Shown in pieces: positions 11,956-64,000 of a stretch of 64,000 bases of DNA. The notes under the pieces were generated by a model. The model ran no database searches and was not told the origin of the DNA. It worked only from the letters and a program-made list of their open reading frames with translations. This stretch comes from Diadema antillarum. Lineage: Eukaryota. The DNA is taken from assembly GCF_040938485.1 (NCBI RefSeq), contig NW_027271052.1, forward strand, positions 558,001 to 622,000. Reading direction: 5' to 3'. Position numbers and translations under genes: made by a program. Each line of letters opens with the position of its first letter. Within the stretch, counting starts at the first letter, position 1.

Positions 11956-13510
11956 CTAAGGTGTTATTCTAAACTTGTACATTTCCTCGTAGTAGGGCAT
12001 TTCCTTCTCGGCAACCTCCCTGATATCATTTGTCACCCCATCAAGAGAAGCGGAAGTGGAGGAAGGTTTAAAACAAGTACTCTTAAAGGCGTTGGCAAAC
12101 CACAGGTTATAACGCGGAGCCTCGAGGACGTTCGAACACACACTGTGCCACTTCAGGACCACATCGGATGAGGCGTCCCAAGTTACGTAATCCTCGGAGT
12201 ACGGGATACCCAGTGCGCGGAAGAGCAGTGGAAGTATGATTGCCGGATCCTCCATGAGTTCATCGATGTCGACAATGACCGGGTTGTTATCGACGTTTTC
12301 TCGAATGTGGCACCACAATTTGTGGATTTCCCTAAAAGCGTAAAACGTTCCTTCCTCCGGGGGTGGTGCAAAATCCATAATATGGAAGTTTTCCGGGTCC
12401 ACTTTCGGTATGCCCCATGGTAGGTCTTCTGGATCCACTCCTTCTACTGATTTCAGGAATGTCTTCCGAAGAGATTTGTACGCCTTCACAGGATGTCGTA
12501 TGAGGAAGCAATGTCGAAAACCACTGGATGGATCAGGGAGGTACTTGTATCGGCTCGGAGGCATGCCGGTGGCCATGTCTTTGATGAAGACAAATTTCGT
12601 GGTGGGAAGAATTGAGTCGAATTTTTGCTTTAGCCTAACAGGTCTGTGGATAAGGACAGGAGTAATTGTAGTAATGAATCCTCTTTGACTTCTCATACAC
12701 GATTAAAGATCATTAAAATACAACGCTTAAGATGTTGATTATGCAGAATAAGAATATTTGAAGATGAATAACATTTTCACTGCATCCTAATTGATATCGA
12801 CTTACTTAAAGGGTAATTGTAATTTAGATCAAGTTCGCTTGGTATAGTTCTTTAGGTTTTGTAAGCCATTGGCTGATTGGCATTGTTTGAGTCTAGGAGG
12901 AAAGGGAAGTAGTGAGTATTCTACCTCATTCCTAGTTTTGAATTCAATATTTTTATAAGTTGCTGAACGTACTAAACAGAATCGACGCAATCACGCCATT
13001 GTCTATTGCAACAAGTGCTTATTTTCTCCAAGGATTTAGGATTAAGGTTAGGGTTGTGATAACGGTTTAGGTTTGGTTTGATGTAATGATTAGGATTGGA
13101 TTGAAGATTACGTTGGTGGGAAGGATGTTTGGCTTAGCGTGCAGATATTTTATGGGAGCAATTCTCGCAGGAGTTAATGTCATGGAATCCATACAGACAT
13201 GGTACGTTTCGTGGAAAAAAAAAACCACTTACGACAATAGATCGAGATTGAAGCTCTGTGTGTCGACGCCCAAATTCAAACTTTTTGCAGCATCCAGGTA
13301 AACCTCTTCGTTACCAGCAATATCAAGAGGAAGCGGATCGGATTTATATAGTTCCCTGGCAAACCTGGAAATGACATACGGCTCGAGCCAGACTTCGGCG
13401 CCGTCAACGAAGCTCATGCATTTTGTCATCGCTGTCGACACCGAGCGGGGAACGCACCACATGATGACTCGTGCACGCCCGTCTTCGGTCGTTTTGGGGT
13501 CAGTAGCCAT
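11956..13510 (-). CDS. Sulfotransferase-fold protein, copy 1; complement join(13233..13510, 11956..12643); 321 aa
   Basis: ATG at 13510 (MATDPKTTEDG). Donor TC|GTAAGT after DLL-S, acceptor CCACAG|A at 12644/12643; the phase-2 junction restores S-PVRLKQ. Motifs WCVPRSVST, FVFIKDM, FLIRHP; no in-frame stops. Confidence 0.9.
12995..13181. mobile_element. MITE with internal degenerate TTAGGG-like repeats in intron 2 of copy 1 (orthologous insertion in copies 3 and 4)
   Basis: Degenerate version of the element at 22602-22801 and 31771-31967, at the same intron position. Confidence 0.55.
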
Positions 13511-13842
13511 TTTATTGCTCCTACAAAGAGTTTTAAGCAGTTTCAAGAAGATATTGTTACAGAGAGAAGGAAGTGCCTCAAACGCAGTAATAGAAAGTTA
13601 ACATTCACTAGACAATATTAATGTTGCAATACTGGTTCCTTCAAATGATCGAATAAGTGGTAACCATTTTCAGCATCTAAACTGCACCTTTCATTATCAT
13701 AATTCGAATAAAGATGTAGAGTTTCACAAATCTAATGAACGTTAGTGATCTAAATAGATACCAGTTTGATCGGTAGTTTTGTTTCGAGCGGCTGATCTCC
13801 CAGTAGCAACATTTAGAATTAGGAACGTATATAAACCTGCAA

Positions 13843-13910
<68 letters not shown>

Positions 13911-14085
13911 AAATGTACATTCTGAATCGATGACCGAGCCCCTATATCGTCGCTCAAGAAAAGACGAACTTCATCTGCATAGTTTCAAACAAGTGTATCA
14001 AATTCTTTGGTGAAGAAGCAAAACTATCTAATGGATATGTAGCAGTAGCTAAGCTCGATATCGTACCATGCGCTGTAAAGCTTAC

Positions 14086-14377
14086 CAGTGCACGCCCTGT
14101 TTGCGGGAAAAATTGTCCCTCTTCCCTTTGGGATCTCTTCGTGTCAGCAAACCTCCGACGAATGGTCCGATGTTAATTGTGTCTAGCGTTTTGAGTACAA
14201 GTATGTGTGTTCGATGTCTCGCAGTGGTACCTTCTATCAAATCTTGGCTCTTTGTTGTTGACACACAACGATCTTACAAACTTTGTGAAGTGGTTCGGTC
14301 TCACGGTGGCGTGATAGTAAAGTCAACGTGATTAACTTGCGATAGCTACAAAGCATTTTTAGTTGTGTACCTGACCT
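14086..14377 (-). promoter_or_regulatory. Conserved upstream module / putative non-coding leader exon of copy 1
   Basis: AGGTCAGGTACA at 14377-14366, ATCACGCCAC at 14315-14306, donor CTG|GTAAGC with intron starting at 14085. The matching acceptor TTTGTAG lies 10 nt before the ATG. Confidence 0.6.
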
Positions 14378-14692
14378 TCGTCCGACATAACGACATGAAT
14401 GTGTAAACGTCAAGTTATACGACCTTTTCAGAATTCATTAATCATATTCTTGATGGTAATGACAATATCTGAATATGAATGTTTTATCAAATCCGTTTAT
14501 TTGACATTACTTGTAATATATTTTAACCCTGATTGCAATATCCGCACTAAATGAGATATTTGAAGCGTAATGGAAACAAAGACAACAGCTCTGCTCGGTT
14601 TCTCTTTCTTTGCTTGTCTCTGTGATGCCATTAATATCACTGACATTTTCTTTTTTATTGTGAGATAAGAATATGAATTAGACAAACATAGA

Positions 14693-14867
14693 GCAGTGAT
14701 TTGGTTCAGTCGGTAGCGCGTTGTGCCTCCAGATAATGGACCCAGGTTTGATTCCCTATAGTCGATCTGAGCAATGCTGTGTGTCATCATATAGTGTGGG
14801 AGGGTCCCAACTCATGCACGTAAAAGATCATGATTTTACTTGTCGCCAAGAGCAGGGTGCGCACAAC

Positions 14868-14868
<1 letters not shown>
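14693..14868 (+). mobile_element. tRNA-derived SINE, 3'-truncated
   Basis: Box A-like TTGGTTCAGTCGG, box B-like GGTTTGATTCC and core CATGCACGTAAAAGATC. Same family as 20285-20626, 29281-29713 and 38390-38723; ends at a (TA)n tract. Confidence 0.7.
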
Positions 14869-62129: not shown

Positions 62130-62757
62130 TTGCCGGGTTAGCTACGGGGGCTTGTTGCGAGTAGGGATTTTGCAGTACGCAGGAGAATTTTCTGCGGGCG
62201 TACAAGGATGTTGGCGAGTTCCGTACTTGCGTCTTACTGCTAAGATGCGTGATATTTACCTGCTACTTGCGTGTAATACGTGTGACCTGCGTGAGAGCTT
62301 TGAAACCGATCCATTTTTAGATAAACGAATGACTGCGAAGTACTGCCGCTAAGGGCCTCCTACTGCGTGTTCATCTGCGGACAAACCACCGCGACTCGCC
62401 CGGAACGAGTTTTGAGCATGCTCAAGGCCTTGTCACACCGTGTCTTGGGAAGCCTTGCGGGGAAAGATTTTTGCTACCCGGACCTCCCAGCAGTTAGTCC
62501 GCACCTGAATGTACCTAGCGCGTAATCTCACCCATTGTTGCTCGGAGGTACGCACGCAAGTCCGATTTAAAGGTGTGACAGGTCCTAAACTTGACTGCGG
62601 GTGAATGGGACTTGCGTGGGTAACTCCGCGTAACTACGGGTGAGATACGTGCTAGTAACTGTCATGTACGGGTCATCTGCGGGGACCTCCTTGCAGTAAA
62701 AAATGTTCTTCGCAAGTCGCACGCAAGGCTTACCCGGAAAGGTGTGATGTGGCCTTA
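62130..62757. mobile_element. Harbinger-like MITE composite related to 48890-50995
   Basis: Same internal junction (TTTTGAGCATGCTC-AAGGCCTTGTCACAC, compare 50037-50065) and terminal CCGGAAAGGTGTGATGTGGCCTTAA. Confidence 0.6.
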
Positions 62758-62789
62758 AGGAATGATATATAATATTTTACATCGGTGAT

Positions 62790-63100
62790 GCTGGTTATTC
62801 CGAAGGTTCGTTGATCTAAAAATGAAATAAGGTCGTTATTCCGAAGGTGCGTTATTCCGAAAATGAAATAAGGTAGTAAGTAACGAACCTTCGGAATTAC
62901 CATTATTGTACGAACCTTATTTCTTTTTTGGATTAACTCACCTTTGTAATCATAAACCTTATTTCATTTTTACATTAACGAACCTTCGAAAATGAAATAA
63001 AATTGAATGAAAATAAAATGAAATGAATAACTAACCGTATGTCATATTGAGATTACCGAACCTTCTAAAAATGAATCTTCCGAATAGCGAACTGTAACCA
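62790..63100. repeat. TTATTCCGAAGGTTCG / AAAATGAAATAAG repeat element, related to 60725-60910
   Basis: Shared motifs in direct and inverted orientation. Confidence 0.55.
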
Positions 63101-63299
63101 TTCCAGATACAGCAAAAGTTACAGAAAGACAATTTTTCTGAGGTCATCATACTTTAATTTGTGCCAATAACTTGTATCAGCAATGTTGTTAAACAGATGT
63201 AATAAACACTTTCACACACTGCCATTTTCATTGAAGAGGACTGACGTAAAAGGTCTTATAACCTTGAAGTTTATGCATTCATGTCATAATGCTCTACAA

Positions 63300-63568
63300 A
63301 GGTCAGGTACACAATATAAAATGTTTGCACTAATCACGTTGATTTATCTATCACGCCACTTTGAGACCGAACCACTTCAGAAAGTTCACAAAAGATCGGT
63401 GTGTGTCTGAACGATTGAAAATACTACGGCAAGATATCGAACATACACTTACATTCTCAACGCGAAACGCATTGCCGTATTTGACCGTTCGTCAGAGGAC
63501 GATTGATGCCAAAACGTCTCGAAGGGAAAGAGAGAACAGTTTTAACGGAACACGGCGTGTACAGTCTG
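63300..63568 (+). promoter_or_regulatory. Conserved upstream module / putative leader exon of copy 7
   Basis: AGGTCAGGTACA at 63300-63311, ATCACGCCAC at 63350-63359, donor CTG|GTAAGC at 63569, acceptor TTTGTAG ending at 63942. Confidence 0.55.
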
Positions 63569-63952
63569 GTAAGCTTATGATGCATGTTATGAGATCAAGC
63601 AAAAGTGAAAAGCTAGAACTACGTATCCACAAGTCAGTTTGAAAAATAAAAGTTATTTTATGTAGAGAAAGAAATCATCTTTCAAAGCTTGCTAATGTCT
63701 TGAAAGACCAACTGCTCAAACTGAAATCCTCAATCTGTTTATTTTTTTCCTATCGTAATGAAAAGATCTATTTTCTTTCTTTTTGGTTCAAAGGAAGATA
63801 ATGAAAAGTCTATTTAAATGTTGACGATGGTAGGGGATATACATAAGATATGTAATTGCTGCGTGAATGTAGAAACTTCTTTTATCTCATGTAGAATATT
63901 ATTCTCTTTGAAACAATGCAACGTGCTGTTCGCCCTTTGTAGGAAGACGGAA

Positions 63953-64000
63953 ATGACCACTGACGCAAAATTTACAAGCGACGGAAACGCACGAGTCATC
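63953..64000 (+). CDS. Sulfotransferase-fold protein, copy 7, first 16 codons (runs off the window; not in the ORF track)
   Basis: ATG at 63953 gives MTTDAKFTSDGNARVI, homologous to the other N-termini, and lies 10 nt after a TTTGTAG acceptor as in the other copies. Confidence 0.8.
   Translation, partial: MTTDAKFTSDGNARVI

Follow-up and report, generated by a model that had tools for sequence, protein, structure and literature searches.

A tandem array of seven sulfotransferase-fold genes

The window analysed in the present study is a 64,000-nucleotide stretch of the sea urchin Diadema antillarum genome (NCBI RefSeq assembly GCF_040938485.1, contig NW_027271052.1, positions 558,001 to 622,000 of the forward strand; contig JBFRCO010000164.1 of assembly GCA_040938485.1), which harbors a tandem array of genes encoding proteins of the sulfotransferase fold between positions 11956 and 64000. 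Tblastn and blastn searches of one copy against the whole window, together with a listing of open reading frames (ORFs), revealed seven paralogues (c1 to c7), each of which has two coding exons joined at one common phase-2 intron. Their positions within the window, with protein lengths in amino acids (aa), are as follows:

c1: 13510-13233 and 12643-11956 (stop included), minus strand, intact gene of 321 aa, identical to RefSeq protein P0003
c2: 16597-16889 and 17205-17892, plus strand, intact gene of 326 aa, identical to RefSeq P0128
c3: 22275-22555 and 23202-23892, plus strand, intact gene of 323 aa, identical to RefSeq P0002, the copy used for the structure model
c4: 31445-31725 and 32359-33049, plus strand, intact gene of 323 aa, identical to RefSeq P0123
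c5: 42187-42473 and 42829-43519, plus strand, intact gene of 325 aa, identical to RefSeq P0134, the most diverged copy
c6: exon 1 at 52417-52709, intact with its donor, and an exon 2 remnant at 53030-53620, plus strand, broken on the window contig
c7: ATG at 63953, plus strand, truncated by the window end at 64000, 326 aa on the contig, with a start matching RefSeq P0006

Copies c1 and c2 are arranged head-to-head and all remaining copies point rightward, with protein identities of 79-89% among the copies. In the five intact copies within the window (c1 to c5, 321-326 aa), the models built by reading the DNA share the same splice sites, with TC before the donor GTAAGT and CAC/TAG before ACCTG at the acceptor, at an identical phase-2 position. 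The spliced models of these five copies were letter-identical to RefSeq proteins of D. antillarum, all labelled "uncharacterized protein", indicating that independent gene models agree with the present ones. Sequence fetched around c7 revealed that this copy is complete on the contig beyond the window edge, and no eighth copy was visible in the 10 kb of contig following it. The original prediction, made from the window's letters, had thus counted the seven paralogues, their common exon structure and the five intact frames correctly, and had rightly guessed an echinoderm host, whereas its expectation that the array continues to the right was not borne out over these 10 kb. In addition, no Pfam match was found in the intergenic ORFs scanned for co-clustered genes, a scan at the ORF level that a multi-exon gene could escape.

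In c6, the acceptor and the adjoining ~100 nt at the start of exon 2 are deleted or scrambled, a lesion that removes the beta-strand bearing the conserved catalytic Lys; the RefSeq model at this position is a 210-aa truncation (P0138). An intact version of c6 (P0137, 327 aa), 100% identical over the window remnant, was found on another contig of 4.67 Mb, suggesting that the lesion is probably haplotype-specific or possibly an assembly artefact. Near-identical arrays were detected on three contigs of GCA_040938485.1 (3.0, 4.67, and 2.83 Mb), two of them besides that of the window, which points to unpurged haplotigs in the assembly, to a segmental duplication encompassing the entire array, or to both. 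In summary, the locus is a seven-gene tandem array in which six copies are complete on the contig and only c6 is disrupted on the window haplotig.

Family membership, fold and predicted active site

The full-length array proteins matched the Pfam family PF19798 (Sulfotransfer_5), with scores of 32.5 bits for P0001 (a c2-like protein) and 34.0 bits for P0002 (c3) against a gathering cut-off of 23.2 bits, and exon 2 alone scored 23.2-27.2 bits, at or just above the cut-off. No match to PF00685, the classical SULT family, was detected with the exon pieces at E <= 1 or with the full-length proteins at E <= 0.1, and NCBIfam had no model for the Sulfotransfer_5 family. In a profile search, PF19798 was precomputed on nearly all relatives among the 120 matches listed, and the family appeared heavily multiplied in echinoderms, namely in the urchins Diadema, Lytechinus, and Strongylocentrotus, in Amphiura (a brittle star), in Holothuria and Apostichopus (sea cucumbers), and in the crinoid Antedon; it also occurred in Ptychodera (a hemichordate), in one acoel, in a fungus, and in bacteria. 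Neighbouring clusters in the ESM Atlas, cnidarian and mucoromycote ones among them, were 64-98% PF19798. The automatic name of some relatives, "branched-chain-amino-acid aminotransferase-like protein 2", derives from plant fusion proteins, and this naming, along with the Pfam scores, agrees with the Sulfotransfer_5 or plant BCAT-like (branched-chain-amino-acid aminotransferase-like) kinship that had been proposed.

Structural comparison pointed to the same assignment. An AlphaFold prediction for c3 that drew on 68 diverse relatives reached a predicted local distance difference test score (pLDDT) of 91.8 and a predicted template modelling score (pTM) of 0.91, and all 50 matches listed by Foldseek against the PDB were sulfotransferase-family proteins that depend on 3'-phosphoadenosine-5'-phosphosulfate (PAPS), 45 of them at E <= 1e-3. 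A non-sulfotransferase P-loop fold, named in advance as the finding that would overturn the predicted fold, was returned by neither AlphaFold nor Foldseek. The two closest solved structures were the sulfotransferase (ST) domains of CurM and of an olefin synthase (OLS) (PDB 4gbm and 4gox), which were also the sole significant sequence-profile matches in the family profile search (E 1.1e-13 and 6.9e-11, respectively). A single-sequence PDB search with exon 2 returned an antibody match only, which was judged to be due to chance.

Both cofactor motifs named by the original prediction were present in every intact copy: PRSVST, the 5'-phosphosulfate-binding (5'-PSB) loop, which aligns to CurM PRSGST, and IRHPxKxYKS, the 3'-phosphate motif, which aligns to CurM LVRHPYSVIES. 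In the profile alignment (c3 numbering), Arg23 of PRS, Glu44 of EPY, Lys115 of VKD, and Arg143 of RHP together with Ser151 fell on matching CurM residues. Across the 68 diverse relatives, R143, P145, and S151 were invariant, and P22, R23, S26, E44, K115, and H138 were at least 90% conserved. The Arg in the 5'-PSB loop proved less unusual than had been claimed, as the CurM and olefin-synthase domains also carry Arg in their PRSGS loop and Arg78 of the tyrosylprotein sulfotransferase TPST2 is catalytic. The catalytic residues of TPST2 are Arg78, Glu99, and Lys158 (PMC10951654), and the Arg-to-Glu spacing of +21 in this enzyme is the same as that between Arg23 and Glu44 in the array proteins. Moreover, the highest 19-residue Kyte-Doolittle hydropathy mean was 0.98-1.29 and no N-terminal hydrophobic stretch was observed, indicating the absence of a membrane segment or signal peptide, as originally predicted.

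On this basis, the array proteins are best read as soluble PAPS-dependent sulfotransferases with a Glu base, a scheme modelled on the tyrosylprotein sulfotransferases (TPSTs) and on the CurM sulfotransferase domain. The 5'-phosphosulfate of PAPS would be gripped by the PRSVST loop (Arg23, Ser24, Ser26, and Thr27) and the 3'-phosphate by Arg143 and Ser151 of IRHPVKVYKS, while Glu44, 21 residues past Arg23, would deprotonate the acceptor hydroxyl, and Arg23 and Lys115 would stabilise the transition state and the departing 3'-phosphoadenosine-5'-phosphate (PAP). Since signal peptide and membrane anchor are both lacking, the proteins would be expected to act in the cytosol on small molecules.

This predicted site sets the family apart from the classical cytosolic SULTs. 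The latter have Lys in the 5'-PSB loop and His-based catalysis, with the His two residues after a conserved Lys, whereas the urchin proteins have Arg in the loop and a putative Glu base, and the residues after Lys115 are K-D-M, with no His there. A known sulfotransferase of urchin pigment cells was considered as a member of the array family and rejected, as that gene is sult/sult1c2 (PMC7455242), by its name a classical SULT of PF00685 rather than Sulfotransfer_5. Within PF19798, the urchin proteins share their family with stand-alone bacterial, fungal, and cnidarian proteins and with the N-terminal domain of plant BCAT-like proteins; the plant proteins, however, are fusions of Sulfotransfer_5 to a D-amino-acid-aminotransferase-like domain (PMC13725701), while the urchin proteins are stand-alone.

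The common Arg/Glu/Lys set and spacing, as well as the strong fold matches to TPST1 and TPST2, raise the question of whether the array could encode TPST-like enzymes sulfating cytosolic proteins or peptides. TPSTs are anchored in the Golgi as type-II membrane proteins and modify secreted substrates, whereas the urchin proteins have neither signal nor anchor. Identity in the TPST structural alignments was only 10-16%, and no TPST appeared among the 34 profile matches listed at E <= 10, making such a peptide-directed role very improbable.

The closeness to CurM and OLS likewise calls for an "activating" role to be weighed, in which sulfate serves as a leaving group for elimination, dehydration, or cyclisation and the end products are unsulfated. 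Known examples are CurM and OLS in terminal-alkene formation, insect retinol dehydratase, and sorghum LGS1. In addition to the CurM and OLS domains as the closest structures and only significant profile matches, retinol dehydratase and LGS1 were also among the fold matches. The architecture of the array proteins, however, speaks against such a role. The CurM and OLS domains sit inside cyanobacterial polyketide synthase modules, adjoin an acyl carrier protein and a thioesterase, and sulfate a carrier-protein-bound beta-hydroxyacyl chain for elimination, whereas the urchin proteins stand alone at 321-326 aa, share only ~13% identity with them, and have different cap regions. Moreover, CurM has Tyr at the position of His138, a near-invariant residue specific to the family of the urchin proteins. 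Furthermore, echinoderm sulfate esters are stable, and an activating function is considered unlikely. Taken together, the array proteins are probably soluble, stand-alone PAPS-dependent sulfotransferases of the Sulfotransfer_5 family, with PAPS use, catalysis, and cytosolic small-molecule substrates as the predicted parts of this assignment.

Evolution of the array and candidate substrates

In a maximum-likelihood tree, the window copies and their Diadema setosum counterparts formed a Diadema-only clade (support 98/98), within which c1, c2, c3, and c5 were each in a well-supported 1:1 pair with a D. setosum protein, and c6 and D. setosum P0007, members of a common 90% cluster, adjoined at the clade base. 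Strongylocentrotus purpuratus and Lytechinus pictus each had a single orthologue, LOC115920756 in the former and LOC129260534 in the latter. On this pattern, the copies multiplied before the two Diadema species diverged, and the expansion is specific to the Diadema lineage. The lineage-specific expansion that had been proposed is therefore borne out, in a sulfotransferase family that is recognisable though uncharacterised. The array would have arisen in the Diadema lineage by duplication of a gene present as one copy in other sea urchins. Pairwise ratios of nonsynonymous to synonymous substitution (dN/dS) between copies were 0.25-0.54, with no pair reaching 1; the copies are thus under purifying selection, albeit of a rather relaxed kind.

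Synonymous divergence also differed between the exons, with exon 2 values up to ~3-fold below those of exon 1 in several pairs among c1 to c5 (e.g., 0.073 vs 0.241 for c2-c4 and 0.24 vs 0.71 for c3-c5), suggesting that exon 2 was formerly homogenised among the array copies by gene conversion.

The array might be largely inert, consisting of silent or decaying duplicates or of pseudo-enzymes that bind PAP or PAPS without transferase activity, in keeping with the broken c6 on the window contig and with dN/dS values up to 0.54 in some pairs. The sole run covering the locus, which is not recorded as RNA, covered the c2 intron unspliced, with an even depth of 20-64 over exons and 1-3% divergence; it was read as genomic DNA from a relative, either another individual or another species, and speaks neither for nor against expression. 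However, only one of the seven reading frames, that of c6, is disrupted, and c6 itself is intact on another contig. The intact copies retain every catalytic and cofactor motif, dN/dS stays under 1 in all pairwise comparisons, and D. setosum has retained intact 1:1 orthologues, so that an inert array is quite unlikely.

In a comparison of 13 Diadema proteins, the variable positions were concentrated in residues 41-100 and 161-200, and the cofactor core was conserved. As the copies differ mostly in two cap regions (residues ~41-100 and ~155-200) around this core, the variable caps may reflect a diversified acceptor specificity.

Several points weigh against reading the array as a set of PAPS-dependent sulfotransferases with diversified acceptors. 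Looser constraint on surface loops could by itself account for the variable regions. The Pfam scores are modest and the PF19798 match lies mainly over the C-terminal half of the model, and the template modelling scores (TM-scores) to solved structures are only 0.36-0.49, so that acceptor binding is not readable from homologues. The catalytic roles given to the CurM residues, reportedly assigned by McCarthy et al. in 2012, reach the array proteins by analogy. Moreover, the literature searched yielded only domain listings and no biochemical evidence on any PF19798 member, and the run described above reads as genomic DNA rather than RNA.

With regard to substrates, sulfated metabolites abound in echinoderms, and Diadema savignyi is a reported source of cholesterol sulfate (PMC6780655, PMC8145587), which serves as context only. 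No paper naming the enzymes behind echinoderm sulfated metabolites was found, nor was any literature found under the LOC identifiers of the urchin orthologues. Sterols or saponins as substrates of the array enzymes are a conjecture. More broadly, it could tentatively be proposed, as a possibility that we hold to be rather doubtful at present, that the sulfated small molecules of echinoderms (sterol sulfates, sulfated saponins, steroidal polyols, and aliphatic sulfates) are products of stand-alone Sulfotransfer_5 enzymes, a group greatly expanded in echinoderms and hemichordates, with the Diadema array as a battery serving one acceptor class per copy. If true, this would provide the first function for the whole of PF19798, which is widespread in bacteria, fungi, cnidarians, plants, and ambulacrarians and includes the plant BCAT-like fusions. 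The genes are already present in RefSeq as uncharacterised proteins and both the fold and the family are known, and thus the finding in itself is not surprising. Its main value lies in a tractable entry to PF19798 function and to echinoderm sulfated metabolites, since a compact set of intact paralogues, a predicted TPST/CurM-type site, and the lone orthologues of two laboratory urchins, S. purpuratus and L. pictus, make the function of the family directly testable.

Upstream blocks, assembly gaps and surrounding DNA

In addition to the coding exons, a conserved block of ~350-400 bp was identified 0.4-1 kb upstream of the ATG in every copy but c5:

14441-14078, minus strand, upstream block of c1
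15846-16200, plus strand, upstream block of c2
20865-21212, plus strand, upstream block of c3
30513-30863, plus strand, upstream block of c4
51598-51919, plus strand, upstream block of c6
63247-63576, plus strand, upstream block of c7

The blocks terminate at an invariant donor (TG followed by GTAAGC), and a conserved acceptor, TTTGTAG followed by GAGGAATAAA, lies ~10 nt before the ATG in c1, c3, c4, c6, and c7; the corresponding acceptor in c2 is TTTGCAG, and c5 has none. All blocks also contain, without variation, AAGGTCAGGT, a sequence similar to an extended nuclear-receptor half-site (AAGGTCA). Judged from these signals, the block may represent a shared promoter and a non-coding 5' exon.

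Three runs of N interrupt the array:

21465-21631, assembly gap between the c3 upstream block and the c3 ATG, within the putative intron of the 5' untranslated region
26584-26721 and 26874-27021, assembly gaps in the intergenic spacer between c3 and c4

All three lie outside the coding exons and coding introns, and no reading frame depends on them; with gaps of indefinite length in the array, seven is a lower bound on the copy number.

Between c5 and c6, a GC-richer stretch was observed at 48000-52000 (45-47% vs ~38% elsewhere), in which a 186-aa ORF at 50067-50627 gave no Pfam match. The left flank of the array (1129-1830, 4036-4929, and 10249-11028) consists of retroelement debris, comprising a reverse-transcriptase ORF (RVT_1, E 2e-29), an integrase-core fragment with a score under the Pfam cut-off, and LINE-like (long interspersed nuclear element) ORF fragments on the minus strand that were recognised by eye, one of which was scanned and gave no Pfam match. 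Furthermore, the coding intron of c1 (12945-13342) contains a degenerate CCCTAA-like repeat of the telomere type, and similar stretches occur in the introns of c3 (~22560-22760) and c4 (~31840-31930). The depth of the intron repeat in run X1 was ~30-fold above that of the neighbouring exons, suggesting a dispersed repeat.

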